From assembly GCA_028023455.1 (NCBI GenBank), contig JAQFVV010000007.1:12524001-12588000 (forward strand): a stretch of DNA of 64,000 nt. The letters run 5' to 3'. How positions within the stretch are numbered: position 1 is the first letter of the stretch; the number at the start of each line of letters is the position of its first letter. The translations under genes were made by a program, and so were the position numbers. A model generated the notes under the pieces. That model ran no database searches and had not been told where the DNA came from. It worked only from the letters and a program-made list of their open reading frames with translations. This DNA is from Epiperipatus broadwayi (taxonomy: Eukaryota; Animalia; Onychophora). This document shows, in pieces, positions 24,155 to 64,000 of this stretch.

Positions 24155-27100
24155 CTAAGAACCAGTCCATGTGGATAGGTAGATTTCTTTGGGTGCAAGA
24201 AGCTTATCTTTTTTTCGAATAGAATTAAATGTATCTCTAATAAAAAGTTGTGAGTCCAATGGAGAATTGGTTATAATTATATGACATCTAAGTAACCATA
24301 TTACGTGGTTAATAAACATGCATCTTCTGATATTGCAGAAATTACCCATTTTAATATTATGAATGATATCAAAGAGTTTTGGATTGTGATTATTGAAATA
24401 ATTTTGAATTATATATTTTGCTTCTCTTAGTCCCGAGCAAGAAACAAGAATATGATCAAATGTTTCACTATCTTTTTTACACAAAATACATAAGGAATCA
24501 ATCCTTTTAAATCCTCTATTTGAAAGAAGGAAATCGTTGGTAGGAAGTGAAGATAGATTTATTTTAATGATAAAATCAATATATTTAGGCATTAAATACC
24601 ATTTTCTCATTTTATTAAAAAGATTGATATTAGTCACTTCAAGATAACTAGGAGGGCATATCAGCTGAGGGTTTATCATTTTAAACGTGTCCCAATATGT
24701 GTGCTTATTATTAAAAAGAATTTCATTTAAATCCATTTGTTTATCAATAAGTGAGATGAGAAGTTGTAGCCATTTTTTTTTAATATTCGGGGGAGGCGTA
24801 TCTGTGGGAATGATTGTGTCAATAATGTTTTGGTAATTAAATTCAATCTTGATGTAGTAGAATAAATTAACTATATTTTTAATTAATAATGTATTAATTG
24901 AATGTAAACCTCGGCCATTAAGTATTTTTGGATTTTGCATTTTACGTATACTGATACAGAACACTTTTTTTTTCCCAAAGGGGGCCAGAGCACAATGAGT
25001 TAATTTGCGAAGTAAATTTTTTAGTAGGGTTTAAAATCGGTAAATAATAATTAATTCTGCTGAAAACAAGAGAATTTAGTAAGAGAACTTTATCATATAA
25101 AGATAAGTAAATGCTTTTTAGAGAATCTATTATTTTTTTTGTTGATATAATCAGTTTGTCTTGTAACATTTTTCTCATTTTGTTTGGTGAAAGGTACAGT
25201 GGTATACCTAAAAAAGGTTGAGGTTTTGATGAGAAACATGCAGGGACATTTTCTCCTGAATGAAGTTTCCAAACTGCAGATTTCTCTAGATTAAAATTTA
25301 ATTTGTATTCCGATGAAAACTTTTTAAGGATTTTTTCAAGTTCTGGTAGGTGTTTAGCTGATGGCAGCATTACAACAATATCATCCATATATGCAAGATG
25401 TTTAATTTCTTTGTTTAGAAAAGGAACAAAAACTCCAGGAAGTTTAGTTTCCATTTCTATGAGAAGGGGGTTAATATAAGCAATGAATAAAAGTGCACTC
25501 AAGGGTGAGCCCTGAGGAATAGAAATTGATGGTTTAAAGCCAGGTGCAATTCTACCATTGAGTGTAATGAAAATTTCTCTATTAAATAGAAGATTCTCTA
25601 TCATAATAAGATAGATGGAGGGAATTCCATATTGTTGTAGTGTTTTCATTAATATTTCAATTCTTACTGAATCAAATGCTGCTATAATATCTAGTTGTAC
25701 AGCTATTGGCTTTGATTTTCTCTTAATTCTAATGTATTCTGTTAAAATTTTGAAAAAGCAAATTGCATGCATTGTGGATGAACCTTTCTTTGCATATTGA
25801 GTAGAATAAATATTATCTAAAATGTTTTGTTGAATCTTGTCTTTAATCAGCCCTTCTATGATTTTAATAAGAAGAGGAGTCATAGAGATAGGTCTTATAT
25901 TTGATGTAATAGAGGGAAGACCTTTCTTTTTTAAAAAAGGCACCAATGAAATAGGGTAGAGGCCAGGTATGTCTTGACAACTTGAGGCTATGACATCAAT
26001 GACACCTTTTATAATTGGAACAGTAAAGTGAGCCAAATGAGATAGTACAAATTTTGGGAGACCATAAGAGCCAGGATGTGTTTTTTCAGGAAGTGAATTT
26101 AATTTGTTTAAAATTAATTGCTCAGTTATTTCATGATCATTTTTTTGACTATTGTTAAATATGGTTCTAATTTGATTGCTGGATGTTGTACAAAGTTTAT
26201 TGAAGAAGAAATTCCTAATAATCATTAGCATTGAAGAACCAGCATAGTTGGCTCCATTGTCTAAAATGGATAAAGGTGTAATAAGTTTTGGTTTTGATCC
26301 TAATGCCCAACAAATATAACTTTTAGTCCAGGCATGTATACTGGCTAGAAAAACTTTAGATCTCTTAATAGAAATATTTTCAGCTAGTGCCCTTTGTAAT
26401 TCTTTATATTTAATTTTAATTTGAAGTATTTTATTAATATTAAGTGTCTTAGAGGGCATTGAATTCATTATGGCAGACAGAGAATCCATTTCTTTTAGCA
26501 TTTTACATGGTCCATTTTGTTTTCTACAAAAATAATTGGTTATGGCTCTTAGAATTTCAGTAAAAGTAAACCAGGCATCAATCGGTGGCCAAGATAGGAT
26601 ATTTGCCTTGTGAAAATAAATGTAGGCTTCAGAAAAGACAGCCTCGGGTGTTGTAAATTTATTAATTAGTCTTGATGTTCTTGGAAGACCATCAATAATA
26701 TTAATTGGCCCATTTATGCAAAGCAAAATTTTTAAAGCTAGGTGATCAGAGAAAAAAACATGTTTTAGAGATGTTTCAATCTTGAAATGTATGTCAGGAG
26801 AGTAATAAATCAAATCTATAAGTGAAAAATACTGTTTTGTGTAGAAAGAATAAGCATTATTATTAAAGAAACCTTGAGCTGACATGAGACCATAATTTAT
26901 TAAATGTAAATATTTTCTGTCAAATGTGTGATAAGGAAGATTAAAATCGCCCAATAGAATAGTTGATGCTGAACTATGATAAAGAGCCAAGTTAATTATA
27001 TTTATTACTTTATAAATCGTATTACTATTATTTTGTAGATAGAGATATATTACATTTAGATTTGTCTGACCAAATACAAAATTAACTATTATAACATTTG

Positions 27101-27372
27101 AATCTAAATGGATAATATTAAAGGTTGTAAATTTAGAGATGTAATTTACTATGAAGGCAACTCCTCCTGATGGAGAATTTGCTATGGAGAATTTAAATAG
27201 ACCTAGTGAAGATAAAATTTCTGATATTTTGCAGTTGCTGTTTATATGTAATTTAGTTTCTGCAAAGAAAATAATATCTGGTGTTTTTTTTAATAAAAAA
27301 TCTTTTATAGCATAGACACTGTTGTAAAGAGTTTAATCCTCTTACATTTATACCTATTATTTTAATTTTCAT
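24155..27372 (-). CDS. ORF2: APE endonuclease, reverse transcriptase and C-terminal CCHC zinc finger (3 frameshifts in this sequence)
   Basis: Starts MKIKIIGINVRGLN at 27372. APE motifs PDIIFFAET, SGGVAFIV, LLGDFN, SLIDLIY, SDHLAL. RT motifs RPISM, LDIIAAFDSV, PQGSPLSALLF, YMDD, FLGIP. Zinc finger CILC...ETFDHILVSC. Frameshifts near 27325, 27000 and 24965; the 682-codon core has no stops. Confidence 0.9.
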
Positions 27373-27446
27373 TGAGTATTGATAAAAACTAGAATTTTAA
27401 AATATAAATTAAATTTGATTAGGCATCAATGGAAAAAATGAAAGAA

Positions 27447-29796
27447 TCATTCCAATATATCAAATCCAACTAAGGGTGAGAATTGGAAATCACTCTCTTT
27501 GTCTTCTACCACTTCAGGTGTTAATAAATTAAGATGTGACCCTGAATTTGTAGGAGTGATATAAGCAATCACATTATTTGTTGTACTTACTGATGTATTA
27601 GACTTCTCTATTTGCATTAGATTATCTAATTCATTTTCATATTCTTGATTTTTTTTAATTTTTTTTTTCTTTTTGTTAGGATGTTTAGTAATAGAATTTA
27701 AGTCATTATCAGAGCCACAAAGTGTGCTTGAACTATTAGAAGAATCATTTGTTATTATTTCAGTAGTTTTATCTAAATTTGTAATTAAATTTCTTTCTTT
27801 TTTTAGTTTATGTAATCTTGGTAAACTCTTATTTAAATGAGAATTAATTAATTGTTCAGAAGTATTAAGAAAACATTGATCTTCTATTTATTTTTTATTT
27901 TTTTCTATTTCTTTGTGAAGAATCCCTGTAATCTCTTGTGATTTGAGTTGTTGATTTCTTTCTAATTGGCTACTTTGCCTATTTTGAATATTAATAATTG
28001 AAGAAGAATTATGAGAAAAAGAATTTCTATGATGATCAATGTTTGATGCAAAACAGGATTCTTCCCGTTGTTTGTTTTGATAATCCAAAACTGGGCAACA
28101 GTGAAATTTAGATGATTTAATATTACATCTTTGGCAAAAAGTTTTCGGACAGTCTTTAATTAGATGGTCTCTTGATTTGCATATATAGCACTGTGATGGA
28201 ACTCCTTGAAAACTTATTACTAAGTTAGTCTTTGCAACTGTATGAAATGATGGGATGTCTAGAGCAGTGATATTTTCTTTAAGGGCTAAATTAAATGAGG
28301 CTATGTTCAAAAGCACATGGGAAAGAGCTCCGTTCTCATTTAAAAAAAAAAACTCTGAAGTTATGCCATAAATGTTTAGTATTTTTTGAAGATCATGTGA
28401 ATCAAATCCTGGGTAGCAATTTCTTATAATACCTTTTAGGGATCTTTTTATATTTAAATCAACTTTACATAACCATAAATCTCCAAGCATTCTGTAAGTA
28501 TTTATAAAAGCTGTTTTGTAAATTCTAAAATAAGATATCTTTTGTTTTGATGATGATACACTTTATTTATATAATTCCAATGTTTATTTAAACTAAGAGT
28601 GTTATATAATAAATCTATAGGGAAGTGTAAAGGTTTAATGTCATTGTTAGTTGCTGAGATAATTAATGTGTTCTCCTTTTGATATACTTTGAAAGAGTCT
28701 AAAAGTGCTTGAGGAATAGATAAATTAAATTTTTTATTGATTTTATTAAAATCGTCCCATGAGGGAGTAAAAGAATTATCTGCATTTTTTCATTAATAAT
28801 TGATACTTTTGTGTGATCAAAATGAGTTTGCTCTGTTTCTTCATCATCATCTTCAAGGTCTAGAGAGAGAAGTGAGTTTTGTGAAGAATGATGTGAGATA
28901 GTACAATTGTTTGTTGATATTTTAGTTTTAACCTTCTGAGCATAGCTCATTTTGTTTTCATTAATTCCTTTATTATCATTTTCATGTAATACTGAGTAAT
29001 GATAACTATTGTCTTTATTTATATTCTTGCAAACTTCAACAGTTTTATTTTGTTTAGCTTTATCCACAGTCTTATGTTCTTTATCATTAACCCTGGTATC
29101 AATCAAATTGCTAATTTCATTTGAAGAATCATCACTATCTTCTATGCAATTTTTTTTAAAGTTTGAATTGTTAGTTTTATTATATAACTCAAAACTAAAC
29201 TTTTTATCATTCAAAATATTAGGAGATGAAATTAGAGTATTGTTATTTTCATTTCCAATAGACTCTTGATTATAAATACCCACATAATCGTGTAAGTTTT
29301 GATTTTTCAATTTTGGATTATTTTCTTTTACATTTTCTGAAGCAGGGCTTAAGTCAAATTTATCAACATTTGTTGGCAATTCAATACCATTTTCATTATT
29401 TATCTTTTGAACTTCAGAAGTTTTAAAATTTGATATTTGTTTAGAAATGATATTAGTGTTAGAAAAATCTTTATGTAGTAGTACTTTTTTTGACTTTTTT
29501 GTAATTTGCTGATTTGAACTTTTAATAGAATGAATTGAAGCATTTGCTACAATAAAAAAATTTTGTTCTAAATTTCCATTTCCATTGTTATCTGAAGTAT
29601 CATAACGTTCTAATTTAGAATTAGGTTTAACAATGCTTTCTTTCAATATTATTTTCGAATTACTTGAATTATTTGTTTCATTTTCATTTTCAAAAGAAGT
29701 TTCAAAGGTAATTTTAATAGATTTCTTTTTTATATCTTTTGTTGACATTGTTTTTGATGTTTTAAACTCATTTTTCATAGAAACATTTTTTGTCAT
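27447..29796 (-). CDS. ORF1: gag-like nucleic-acid-binding protein with an RRM-like region and CCHC zinc knuckle (2 frameshifts, 1 nonsense)
   Basis: CYICKSRDHLIKDCP (CX2CX4HX4C) followed by CQRC. Frameshifts lie in A-runs near 28788 and 28515. There is an in-frame TAA at 27888-90, after which the frame stays open to TGA 27447-49. Confidence 0.8.
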
Positions 29797-34379: not shown

Positions 34380-35205
34380 CATAAGTTTGTTGTATATATA
34401 TATATATATATATACAACAAACTTATGAAAAATCATTGTCCATCAGCTGTTATTAAGAAAACATTAAAGAGCAACAAAAAGAACCATGAAAAGAAAAAAA
34501 AGAATTATGTATATGTTAGTGTAACCATACATATATTTAAAATGCTGAAAAGCAAAAATTGAATTTATGATATACCATGTGAATGTCAAAGAACAATATA
34601 TTGATTAAACAAGTCACATTGCCTTTTTGAAAAGTGATTGCAAAAACACAAACTGATGATTGCTTGGAAGAGAAAAAACAGATATTCATATGTTCAGTTT
34701 AGAAAATACAAAAACATTGAATAGAGGAAAAATGTTACAAAAAAATTCAAGAAAGCTGCTCACTTGGAAATGGTGAATAACCCCATAACTCATTCTAGTA
34801 TGACAATACATAGTGTATGAAAACCATTAATCACTTTTCTTTTAGGAAAACAATAGAGAGATCAGGAGGATCCTCATTGATATCATATGAAATTTCTACT
34901 GTTGCCTTTAGCAGGGTGGCTGCATTGGTTAGAATGTTACCATAAAATTCAATATTCAAGAATCTAAGGGTCCAGGTTCAATTTCCATGCTAGTACTGTC
35001 ACCGTCAGGCCAACAACACCTGAAGAAAAAAGAATAATACCACTTGGAACATTGTGCAACCTATATACTATTACTAACAATTGAATGTATTTGGAATATT
35101 TAAATTAAGTTAATTTTTTCTAAAGACATTCAATATTTATATTAGATGATGGAAATAGTCCAATATATAACTAAAATGCCTTCATCACAAATCTTCAGAA
35201 AAACA
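32282..35205 (+). mobile_element. Near full-length decayed Penelope-like element (pLTR - RT/GIY-YIG ORF remnant - pLTR)
   Basis: HLTFLCKYKSERIVSKGL (N-terminus), LPKIHKDHVLLSP, FDVKS..TNIP, NIYMEE, WLQYVNDIF, IKFTIE, VYKKFTH, IYDIPCEC..YID. Direct terminal repeats at 32282-32510 (partial) and ~34880-35205, with CTGAAGA cores at 32312 and 35020. Confidence 0.85.
34377..34430. repeat. Perfect 54-bp palindrome centred on (TA)11 inside the PLE
   Basis: TTTCATAAGTTTGTTG-(TA)11-CAACAAACTTATGAAA. Confidence 0.95.
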
Positions 35206-56424: not shown

Positions 56425-58500
56425 TTTAGAGAAAAGCTTTAATTTAGCCTTCAATTAGCATGGTATGCCTAGCATTCTTTCAACTATTTAATAGTCATTC
56501 TCATAGCACAGATTGTAAGAGGTATTTGTGTTATTTATTAGAAAATAAACAATGTAGGGAATTTACATAAAATTTGAATTGTAAATAAATACTGTTACAT
56601 AAACAATTTTTTTGAAAGGGGGATATCTATTCTTGGCAATATGTCAGTCTTCTTTCTCTATAGGTTTGGCATATTTAGAACATACAATTCTGACAGATGT
56701 AAATTCAAAGATATAACCAAGTTTGGATTCATGCTCAAAGAAAATGGATTTAATTTCAGTGCACTCTTTGGTATGATTATGTAAGTATTTGTGTTGCACA
56801 AATCATGTGGATAAATTGGCATATAATTCACCACAATATACTGCATGGCAGTTTGGATAACAGCATCTAATCTTGTATGCAGCTTGGGATTTCATTTCAG
56901 TGGGCAGTTTATTTTTTGTGTTGTTTGTCAACCATTTCAATATGGGGAGGGTGAAGGATAATTTGGTGTGTTATTTATCTTATATGTAGACCCTGGTATA
57001 TATGGAAATGATATTCAGAGTTTGTCATTGACTTGTGTAGGAGGCTGTCTAATCTTAAGATAAAAAATTTTGACAGCTTTAATAAGAACTAAGTCTTTGT
57101 ATCCTGTATATATTGTGCAAAATTTTTGACAGCCTGGATGAGAACTAAGTCTTTGTATCCTATATATATTATGCAAATCTGTGAAATATTTTTTTAATAT
57201 TTATCTTTTATCTCTGCATCAAATTTACATAGAGTATGGTTTATGTATACCAATCCCATGAGACTGGCTAATTTATGGGTCATCAATGTTAAAGTTTAGG
57301 ACATGTATAGATTGGTTTCATTTACACTTTGTAGTTTAACTGAGTAATGTTATGCTGAATATGTAAATTTAAGAATTTGATGTCTTTTAGGTTGACTTCT
57401 TTTTTTATTGTCCAGTTTAATGAAGACAAATGTGTAAGGTTTAACTGTATTTTACTAATTTGTGCCTCTGGAACATAAATAAAGACATCATCAACATACC
57501 GTATATATAACCAAGGATCAAATTTTCTTAAAATATTTAGGTAAAATATCTTCTTCAAATTTATTAAGTACAATACTTGATATTATGTCACTGATATGTT
57601 AGGGGAAGGGTATAGGCCACTGATCTTTTATTTCATAATTTATTGTTAAATAAAGTAGTAATATCTTTATGGATCCAATTTTGCATTCTATGATGAATTC
57701 TGTTTCTTCTGCATCATACTCAGCATTATCCAGCATCTTTTTAACAATTTAAATTGATATTTTATATGGGATGTAACCATATAGCTCAGAAATTTTCAAT
57801 CCATGTCATATGATTATACCTATAAAATTATATGTTTTTAATTTTATTGATTCATTCAAAAGATGATTTGACAGTAAATATTCTGAAACTATATTGATCA
57901 CTGAGCTGAAGTCACACATTAAACATAGATGTATTCTAGTTTTATATTAGTGAAAAGACTAGGAGAGGTTCTGCAGATGGATAGATGATATAATATTCAC
58001 ACTTCATGAACATATTATTCCAACATTTGCAGAGGATAACAGATATAAATTTATCTTCATTTATTTTAATATTGTACAAATTCATTAGTTTGAATTTTAA
58101 CTTCTTGATTTGTATATTCATTTTTACAAAAACATCTGTTTGGATAGTAATACAAACCAATTCTCCTTATGTTCTTTAATACAAAAAAAGGTATTTTCAT
58201 GAAAATATTGCTTAGCGGACTCATTATTTTTTAACCAGTTTTAATTTTCAATCTTCATTTGTTTACAAGCTGCTGATGTTGCTATTTGATCAATAATATT
58301 TCCTCTTTGCTCACTATCATTGTATATTGTTTATATATCAGTGTCAAGCTCTCTCATTGAGTGTTTCTATATTATGCCAACAAATCATGGTCCATCATCT
58401 AGAATCACCTTTATGTTATGAAGCAAGTTGTGTGTTGTCAAATAGACAAGCTTATACATTATTCTAGGAGCTAACTTTATATCATGTTTACCTGCAAGGA
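56425..58500 (-). mobile_element. Decayed Penelope-like element, second family (RT and GIY-YIG)
   Basis: WLYIRYVDDVF (ORF 57322-57573), KFLNLHI, and YKIRCCYPNCHAVYCGE...QH (GIY-YIG). Terminal repeat with a hammerhead-like motif at ~56464-56512. Confidence 0.8.
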
Positions 58501-60698: not shown

Positions 60699-60856
60699 TT
60701 AAAACAGGGTTAAACTCTCCAGACAGTAGTGCCACTCAGTGCAAGCCAGAGTAATCAATGGATGCCAGAAGTCTTGTGCATAGTATCACTATCTAATGCC
60801 TACTCTCTGGTTTGCACTGAGTGGCACTACTGTGTGGAGAGTTTTGCCTGTTTTAA
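60699..60856. mobile_element. MITE-like element: ~50-bp imperfect TIRs, ~50-bp spacer
   Basis: TTAAAACAGG...CTCTCCA.ACAGTAGTGCCACTCAGTGCAA.CCAGAG and its reverse complement; TA/TAA at both ends; partial second copy at 19.2 kb. Confidence 0.8.
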
Positions 60857-62800: not shown

Positions 62801-63150
62801 TGAAATACAATTCTTTAAAATTAAATTGATAAAAAATCAAGTCATATGACCTAATTTTAATACCTTTCAAATGTTATATAGAGGTAAACAAACTCTTATG
62901 AAGCTTCAAAAATACCCTCAACCTCAGCCGTTTCTGCCTAATATATCTTTGGCATTATTAATGTTTGGCGATTTTATATTGCTAGAGCTATTAATATATG
63001 GTGTATCTGAACTTAGTTCATCACATACGGCTATTTGAGTTAGATAGCTGGATTTTTGGACATTTAAATGTCTGAAAGTTTCAGATTTTCTTCTCAATAG
63101 TTAGGCATTGATAAAATGCTGGAGTAGTTCTAGTATTTTTATTCCCTAGC

Positions 63151-63192
63151 ACCTCACTGATGATGCTAGAGGCAGAAACCACGGTCTGAGGT
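63151..63192 (+). ncRNA. Type I hammerhead ribozyme, copy 1
   Basis: ACCTCA CTGATGA TGC-TAGAG-GCA GAAAC CACG GTC TGAGGT. Confidence 0.9.
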
Positions 63193-63513
63193 TGAGGGTA
63201 TTTTTGAAGCTTCATAAGAGTTTGTTTTTAACTTACTCTATATATAACATTTGTAAATAGGAGCTTTATTAAAATTAGGTCATATGACTTTATTTTTTAT
63301 CAATTTAATTTTAGTTTTTTGCTATTAATGCTTTGGCGATTTTATATTGCTAGAGCTATTAATATATGGTGTATCTGAACTTAGTTCAGTCACATACGGC
63401 TATTTCATAGCTGGATTTTTGGACATTTAAATGTCTGAAAGTTTCAGATTTTCTTCTCAATAGTTAGGCATTGATAAAATGCTGGAATAGTTCTAGTATT
63501 TTTATTCCCTAGC

Positions 63514-63555
63514 ACCTCACTGATGACGCTAGAGGCAGAAACCGCGGTCTGAGGT
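63514..63555 (+). ncRNA. Type I hammerhead ribozyme, copy 2 (T>C mismatch at the base of stem II)
   Basis: ACCTCA CTGATGA CGC-TAGAG-GCA GAAAC CGCG GTC TGAGGT. Confidence 0.85.
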
Positions 63556-63882
63556 TGAGGGTATTTTTGAAGCTTCATAAGAGTTTGTTTTTAACTTACT
63601 CTATATATAACATTTGTAAATAGGAGCTTTATTAAAATTAGGTCATATGACTTGATTTTTTATCAATTTAATTTTAGTTTTTTGCTATTAATGCTTTGGC
63701 GATTTTATATTGCTAGAGCTATTAATATATGGTGTATCTGAACTTAATTCAGTCACATACGGCTATTTAAGTTAGATAGCTGGATTTTTGGACATTTAAA
63801 TGTCTGAAAGTTTCAGATTTTCTTTTCAATAGTTAGGTATTGATAAAATGCTGGACTAGTTCTAGTATTTTTATTCCCTAGT

Positions 63883-63924
63883 ACCTCACTGATGATGCTA
63901 GAGGCAGAAACCGCGGTCTGAGGT
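63883..63924 (+). ncRNA. Type I hammerhead ribozyme, copy 3 (consensus)
   Basis: ACCTCA CTGATGA TGC-TAGAG-GCA GAAAC CGCG GTC TGAGGT. Confidence 0.92.
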
Positions 63925-64000
63925 TGAGGGTATTTTTGAAGCTTTATAAGAGTTTGTTTTTAACTTACTCTATATATAACAATTCTTTAAAAAAAAAAAA

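Follow-up and report, generated by a model that had tools for sequence, protein, structure and literature searches.

In animals, circular RNAs made by ribozymes are known to come mainly from retrozymes. The metazoan non-LTR (non-long terminal repeat) retrozymes have been defined as non-coding repeats arranged in tandem, with a unit length of 170-400 nt and a type I hammerhead; Penelope-like elements (PLEs) are regarded as their likely helpers (Cervera and de la Peña 2020, PMC7229834); in Mytilus galloprovincialis, for example, such retrozymes form 350-390 bp repeats and account for ~5,000 type I hammerheads (PMC7229834). A 2026 preprint argues that animal retrozymes are non-autonomous PLE derivatives, based on co-occurrence and terminal-repeat phylogeny, and does so without discussing tails, inverted copies or PLE-type duplications (bioRxiv 10.64898/2026.07.22.740005). 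PLE insertions consist of partial tandems with an adjacent inverted, 5'-truncated copy and carry a 'tail' at one end only (Craig et al. 2021, PMC8557442), a signature described as unique to PLEs (PMC8557442; PMC11167929). The purified anole PLE protein nicks and extends both DNA strands (Frangieh et al. 2024, PMC11167929). It begins reverse transcription inside the RNA, at two adjacent positions some 85-92 nt downstream of the hammerhead cut, and the sequence separating these positions is the tail (PMC11167929). Here we describe a hammerhead-bearing tandem repeat in the onychophoran Epiperipatus broadwayi, found in a stretch of 64,000 nt that we refer to as the window (assembly GCA_028023455.1, contig JAQFVV010000007.1, positions 12,524,001 to 12,588,000). 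We consider it likely that window positions 62807-63992 represent one retrotransposed insertion of a non-LTR retrozyme, travelling as a non-autonomous passenger of PLEs. Elements of this kind have already been described (PMC7229834; bioRxiv 10.64898/2026.07.22.740005), and the present family is an incremental addition to them.

The original prediction for this DNA had placed a tandem array of ~365-nt units at 62956-63981. Tandem Repeats Finder recovers it with a period of 363, 2.8 copies, 95% matches and 2% indels, and direct-repeat analysis yields unit spacings of 363 and 369 nt, in agreement with the array and with the distances foreseen between its predicted cut sites (after 63186, 63549 and 63918). 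The additional hairpins that had been named are present in the sequence, and the units, with a G+C content of 31%, are indeed non-coding: in a trimer of the consensus, no frame stays free of stops for more than 48 codons. Likewise, CpGs are kept in the array, with an observed/expected ratio of 0.49 versus 0.18 in the window. Only the extent had been drawn too narrowly: the array span stands, but in the full feature it is preceded by an inverted partial unit and by a target duplication, the latter starting at 62807. The whole insertion, 62807-63992, is composed as follows, with unit position 1 being the first base past the predicted cut.

62807-62820, no strand: target-site duplication, left copy, 14 bp (ACAATTCTTTAAAA); its last 5 nt are shared with the end of the inverted arm as microhomology.
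62816-62937, minus strand: inverted, 5'-truncated arm of ~0.3 unit; outer end at unit position +127 ('B' start site).
62938-62955, no strand: filler at the head-to-head joint, not alignable to the unit; boundaries approximate, set by eye.
62956-63186, plus strand: partial unit 1 of the forward arm (unit positions 137-369), stopping at the predicted cut after 63186.
63144-63198, plus strand: hammerhead 1, with U at 10.1 and helix III CCACGG, its palindrome broken by a CpG transition.
63187-63549, plus strand: unit 2, 363 nt, with a 6-nt deletion in the CGGCUAU...AUAGCUG hairpin.
63507-63561, plus strand: hammerhead 2, which matches the family consensus exactly, with C at 10.1 and CCGCGG as helix III; predicted cut after C63549.
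63550-63918, plus strand: unit 3, a full-length unit of 369 nt.
63876-63930, plus strand: hammerhead 3, with U at 10.1 and helix III CCGCGG; predicted cut after C63918.
63919-63984, plus strand: terminal partial unit (positions 1-66); outer end at the 'A' start site.
63979-63992, no strand: target-site duplication, right copy, 14 bp (ACAATTCTTTAAAA); the A run 3' of it is target DNA.

The outer end is thus of type B (+127) in the inverted arm and of type A (+66) in the forward arm, which lacks the ~56-nt 'tail' (unit positions 65-120) present in the inverted arm. Roughly in the middle of this tail lies a 10-nt palindrome, GTCATATGAC, at unit positions 93-102 (e.g. window 63642-63651). From its outer end, the inverted arm passes the cut site backwards and runs into a truncated hammerhead with a 4-nt deletion; between the arms the alignment leaves 28 nt unaligned, part of which is counted as arm in the list above. 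The A run after the right end is not a poly(A) tail.

Copies of the unit are found on many contigs of the host genome (5.6 Gb in 18,588 contigs), as the original prediction had expected from a genome-wide search: at least 195 matches, 93-98% identical to the unit, are spread over dozens of contigs and form arrays of 2-15 units. An exact 49-nt hammerhead string occurs 2,094 times (1,046 forward, 1,048 reverse) and a 30-nt hammerhead core 2,397 times, while the reversed control strings are absent in both cases, which rules out the 49-nt hammerhead as a chance motif. From 36 insertions fetched with their flanks we extracted 147 full units, yielding a consensus of 369 nt. These units deviate from the consensus by only ~1-2 nt each and are related in a star-like fashion, with mean pairwise distances of 0.9% within and 1.1% between loci; the copy in the window is somewhat older, with ~4.5 differences per unit. 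The dispersal over many contigs, the target-site duplications and the very low divergence from the consensus bear out the proposal of a recently mobile family. Two 36-mers elsewhere in the unit have 1,033 and 373 exact genomic copies, compared to 2,094 for the hammerhead 49-mer, whereas the three strings are similarly intact in the 147-unit sample (61% for the 49-mer, 69% and 74% for the 36-mers). As judged from these counts, the hammerhead string is common to more sub-families than other parts of the unit. In one locus (L046:4501-5947), seemingly diverged units next to a clean array were unusable for covariation, as they differ nearly exclusively by many 1-5 nt deletions; these deletions probably reflect assembly or read noise rather than age. 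In summary, the family has the unit length (within 150-450 bp), non-coding nature, type I hammerhead, low G+C content and dispersed arrays with target duplications by which non-LTR retrozymes are recognized.

The footprint of the insertions points to the enzymes of PLEs. Thirty-two of the 36 fetched loci are head-to-head pairs of arrays, with 0.3 to 13 units per arm. Their outer ends fall into two classes, A at +55 to +76 (with a few shorter ones) and B at +112 to +127, that is, at about +64 and +120. The two-armed loci comprise 19 B/A and 10 A/B pairs, but no A/A or B/B pairs, with three not assignable; one A end and one B end are therefore combined in all 29 resolved loci, a pairing that is vanishingly unlikely under independent choice of ends. 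Target duplications of 10-18 bp are present in 25 of the 32 two-armed loci, and the targets are 81% A+T, with no strict motif. Neither end of the fetched insertions carries a poly(A) or microsatellite tail. The inner ends are scattered across the whole unit; at the joint between them there is either a microhomology of 1-8 nt or a short filler. Both hallmarks of PLE insertions, the tandem arrangement with its inverted 5'-truncated copy and the tail confined to one end, are thus found in this family. Arms longer than one unit run intact through the cut site and show no trace of a cut template, indicating that the templates were uncleaved multimers or sealed circles. Rolling-circle and linear multimeric templates are not separable by sequence divergence, as the values of 0.9% within and 1.1% between arrays are too close.

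Autonomous PLEs are abundant in the same genome, as read from the GIY-YIG part of their frames. A GIY-YIG profile search of the genome returned 10,242 first-look candidates, and all 150 that were scored pass the Pfam cut-off; the matches lie in open frames of up to 901 aa, many of them in tandem or inverted sets ~3.1 kb apart. In one such set (G000:C12394:20942626-20950119), GIY-YIG matches follow each other at ~3.1 kb, one inverted and then several direct, and sets of this type look like recently active PLEs. Long open frames occur, for example, at G000:C12394:20946730-20950119, C135:336384-336638, C6326:998594-998860 and C12455:3550837-3551091.

The hammerhead motif is laid out in the unit as CCCU-AGC-ACCUCA / CUGAUGA / (C or U)GCUAGAGGCA / GAAA / CCGCGG / UC, continued past the predicted cut by UGAGGU-UG-AGGG. 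The type I invariant core, which comprises C3 U4 G5 A6 N7 G8 A9, G12 A13 A14, A15.1-U16.1 and cleavage after H17 (here CUGAUGA, GAAA and GUC before the cut), is complete in all three units and in the family consensus. Helix I consists of six pairs (ACCUCA/UGAGGU), an AGC/UG internal loop and a four-pair closing stem (CCCU/AGGG). Helix III is a perfect 8-nt palindrome in the family consensus, so that the self-complementary stem III of the original prediction holds for the family and for hammerheads 2 and 3, but not for unit 1 with its CCACGG. The dimeric folding that had been proposed on account of this palindrome is supported by structure prediction, the minimum-energy co-fold of two copies of a 59-nt hammerhead segment being a double hammerhead with an 8-bp helix III (-40.9 kcal/mol). 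As a plus-strand RNA, the unit 3 monomer has a predicted folding energy of -103.7 kcal/mol, with a z-score of -6.07 relative to shuffled sequence, and its minus strand one of -57.3 kcal/mol (z -2.3); only the plus strand thus folds much more stably than shuffled sequence. Hammerhead variants within the family are mostly CpG transitions. In a diverged relative (L048:4132-4189) the core is kept; helix I is preserved there with U·G in place of a U-A pair, and the closing stem through a compensatory replacement of C-G by U-A. The AUG within CUGAUGA opens a frame of nine codons whose UGA stop lies right at the cut site (window 63519-63548, and likewise in each unit). The true open reading frame of the anole PLE begins at the same place in the ribozyme (PMC11167929), and the nine-codon frame may be a remnant of a coding ancestor.

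A second hammerhead family exists in the same genome (L031:1910-2789, L032, L033 and L034), with units ~410 nt apart, a canonical helix II (GACC/GGUC) and helix III CCGG; it passes the Rfam model RF00163. Relative to the helix I of the present family, its outermost pair is swapped from U-A to A-U. Weak small nucleolar RNA and microRNA rows in the Rfam search were rejected as chance matches to CUGA and GA boxes.

Several observations weigh against a catalytically competent, PLE-mobilized retrozyme. Helix II of the family consensus opens with a C10.1·A11.1 mismatch, followed by G-C, C-G and U·G, whereas G10.1-C11.1 is nearly invariant in hammerheads and helix II usually comprises ~4 bp. A U10.1-A11.1 pair is limited to a minority of units (~1 in 9) with a CpG transition, and the helix II of ~4 bp starting from G10.1-C11.1 that characterizes type I hammerheads is lacking in the consensus. 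The claim of a complete hammerhead in every unit therefore stands for the core and falls for helix II. The search with Rfam hammerhead models that had been suggested as a check gave no match to the family at any setting used (64-kb window at gathering score; 1.3 kb and 81 nt at E<=10), although RF00163 does detect other, canonical hammerhead families in this genome. Nor do the inner ends accumulate at the cut site: of 66 ends, one falls on position 1 and four fall within positions 1-9, where 1.6 are expected. An apparent run-off footprint at position 1 was rejected, as it came from a query starting there and was gone against the trimer. No autonomous PLE with the hammerhead or tail of the family was identified; the comparison made, with exact hammerhead strings, places none of the listed exact-core sites on contigs C1-C12 near a listed GIY-YIG match. 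The anole PLE inserts in vitro with no need of hammerhead cleavage and with no reads starting at the cut site; unprocessed RNA was its dominant substrate, and cleavage required protein (PMC11167929). Finally, no run recorded as RNA holds the unit in a sequencing-run search, the four runs that do (X1-X4) being represented by contigs of uncertain kind.

The mismatched helix II, the silence of the Rfam models, the missing run-off footprint and the preference of the anole enzyme for unprocessed RNA would all suit a PLE-dependent repeat whose hammerhead is carried over or crippled, whose transcripts remain linear multimers and form no circles, and in which the motif is kept only for an overlapping protein-binding or start-site region. 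We regard this as possible, if clearly the less likely course. It has to accommodate the retention, in more than 2,000 copies, of the core, of helix I (6 bp, internal loop and closing stem) and of the 8-nt palindrome, as well as the persistence of the same features in the diverged relative, complete with a compensatory change. Furthermore, the axolotl hammerhead HHR_Amex2 cleaves, mainly or better as a dimer, despite a U·U mismatch where its helix II begins, and retrozyme circles have been demonstrated in coral, mussel and axolotl (PMC7229834). On balance, we consider it somewhat more likely than not that the motif cleaves in vivo, as a dimer or with the help of protein. The family may also make the circular RNAs of ~369 nt that the original prediction had proposed. 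A joint in the run contigs that 'goes back 363' was rejected as evidence for such circles, as tandem DNA shows the same joint. The four runs come from two studies and carry two organism labels; most of their contigs are only 90-95% alike, indicating related sub-families in at least two labelled organisms.

Alternatively, the repeat could be a SINE-like (short interspersed nuclear element-like) sequence moved by a long interspersed nuclear element (LINE) with an APE-type endonuclease, its inverted arm having arisen by L1-style twin priming. A LINE with endonuclease, reverse transcriptase and zf-RVT domains does reside in the same window, twin priming is the classical source of 5' inversions, and duplications of 10-18 bp in A+T-rich DNA would also suit LINE endonucleases. 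We nevertheless consider this reading improbable: the insertions lack the expected poly(A) or microsatellite tail, they end at two defined internal positions 56 nt apart, one of each per insertion, which is the PLE tail signature, and inversion is near-universal among them instead of occasional. In addition, the inner start of the direct arm is not at the priming site of the inverted arm. The tandem organization and the head-to-head arms, which recall foldback elements, might further bring to mind an ordinary satellite or local tandem duplication, or a foldback-type DNA transposon with tandem-repeat arms, in which the hammerhead is there by chance. This explanation is extremely unlikely and, for practical purposes, refuted by the thousands of dispersed copies on many contigs, each insertion with its own target duplication, by the absence of the reversed control string from the genome, and by duplication lengths that vary between 10 and 18 bp, unlike a transposase footprint. 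Moreover, the outer ends differ systematically (A versus B), so that true terminal inverted repeats do not exist.

For the retrozyme carried by PLEs, the reading that we favour, the following cycle can be envisaged. Plus-strand RNA, multimeric or circular, would be bound by a PLE reverse transcriptase/GIY-YIG endonuclease, which would nick both DNA strands; each DNA 3' end would then prime cDNA synthesis at one of two adjacent internal start sites of the RNA, and the two cDNAs would be joined in head-to-head orientation, the stretch of RNA flanked by the start sites corresponding to the PLE tail. Multimeric transcripts would be cut by the hammerhead after GUC, probably in the form of a double hammerhead held together by the 8-nt palindromic helix III, or with protein help, and a tRNA-type ligase would seal the monomers into circles of ~369 nt. 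More tentatively, a dimeric Penelope-type ribonucleoprotein might use the two internal start sites coordinately, one per DNA strand, on a single RNA, an idea suggested by the strict pairing of ends but less likely than not. All 29 resolved insertions pair an end at ~+64 with one at ~+120, and the 56-nt tail is roughly centred on the 10-nt palindrome. If it were true, the 369-nt RNA, with its hammerhead and the ~127 nt past it, would hold every cis signal for Penelope-type integration and would constitute a natural minimal substrate, while cleavage by its unusual C·A hammerhead would depend on dimerization or on the help of protein.

The remainder of the window contains a LINE-type retrotransposon on the minus strand (24155-28490). 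Its domains are spread over three frames, with endonuclease/exonuclease/phosphatase and RVT_1 in one of 682 aa, zf-RVT in the one that follows, and a CCHC zinc knuckle in a 200-aa frame upstream. A 40-nt inverted repeat with 95% complementarity and 53 nt between its arms (60712-60844) could be a hairpin or a feature resembling a miniature inverted-repeat transposable element, and a 56-bp tandem repeat with 2.1 copies and 88% matches lies at 57063-57177. ARAGORN finds no tRNA in the window. At 34880-35205, a B-box-like GGTTCAATTTCC is present, and a relaxed hammerhead scan of this segment finds none.

While the link between retrozymes and PLEs has so far rested on co-occurrence and terminal-repeat similarity, the present family offers a footprint that can be counted: insertions combine a target duplication with an inverted arm, and every resolved copy has the tail at one end and not at the other. 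This connects a retrozyme with the mechanism of two start sites that was measured in vitro for a PLE. It provides a short natural RNA for probing this mechanism, and its hammerhead, devoid of the G10.1-C11.1 pair, a test case for the limits of catalysis. A literature search by sequence found the hammerhead string of the family in no paper of the library covered.

In its overall organization, the family resembles the metazoan non-LTR retrozymes, with non-coding tandem units in the range of 150-450 bp, a type I hammerhead, low G+C content, dispersed arrays with target duplications of more than 4 bp, a strongly self-paired plus-strand RNA and co-existing PLEs (PMC7229834); it differs from them in its weaker helix II (C·A at 10.1/11.1, 2-3 pairs). 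With newt satellite 2, axolotl HHR_Amex and Schistosoma Sm-alpha, whose units measure ~330-350 bp, it shares the type I hammerhead and a weak helix III with a palindromic loop that favours dimeric cleavage, and with HHR_Amex2 also the mismatch at the base of helix II. It differs from all of them in unit sequence and host, and its helix II is shorter; cleavage data are available for these three systems, and circular RNA data for the amphibian ones. Its insertions share with PLEs (Penelope/Poseidon/Neptune) the tandem arrangement with an inverted 5'-truncated copy, the one-end tail and the A+T-rich targets (PMC8557442; PMC11167929; PMC4209133), and its RNA the palindromic helix III and two adjacent start sites a few dozen nt 3' of the hammerhead. 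As in the anole PLE, an AUG is found inside CUGAUGA, placed as at the start codon. Unlike PLEs, the unit has no open reading frame and comprises 369 nt instead of ~3 kb, its tail is longer (~56 nt compared to 30-40 nt), and its start sites lie ~64 and ~120 nt past the cut, compared to 85-92 nt in the anole PLE. L1 twin priming, finally, parallels the proposed integration in that both nicked strands prime cDNA synthesis, leaving an inverted 5' segment, a microhomology joint and a single target duplication. In our family, by contrast, poly(A) is absent, priming at both sites involves a fixed position inside the RNA, and inversion is the rule.

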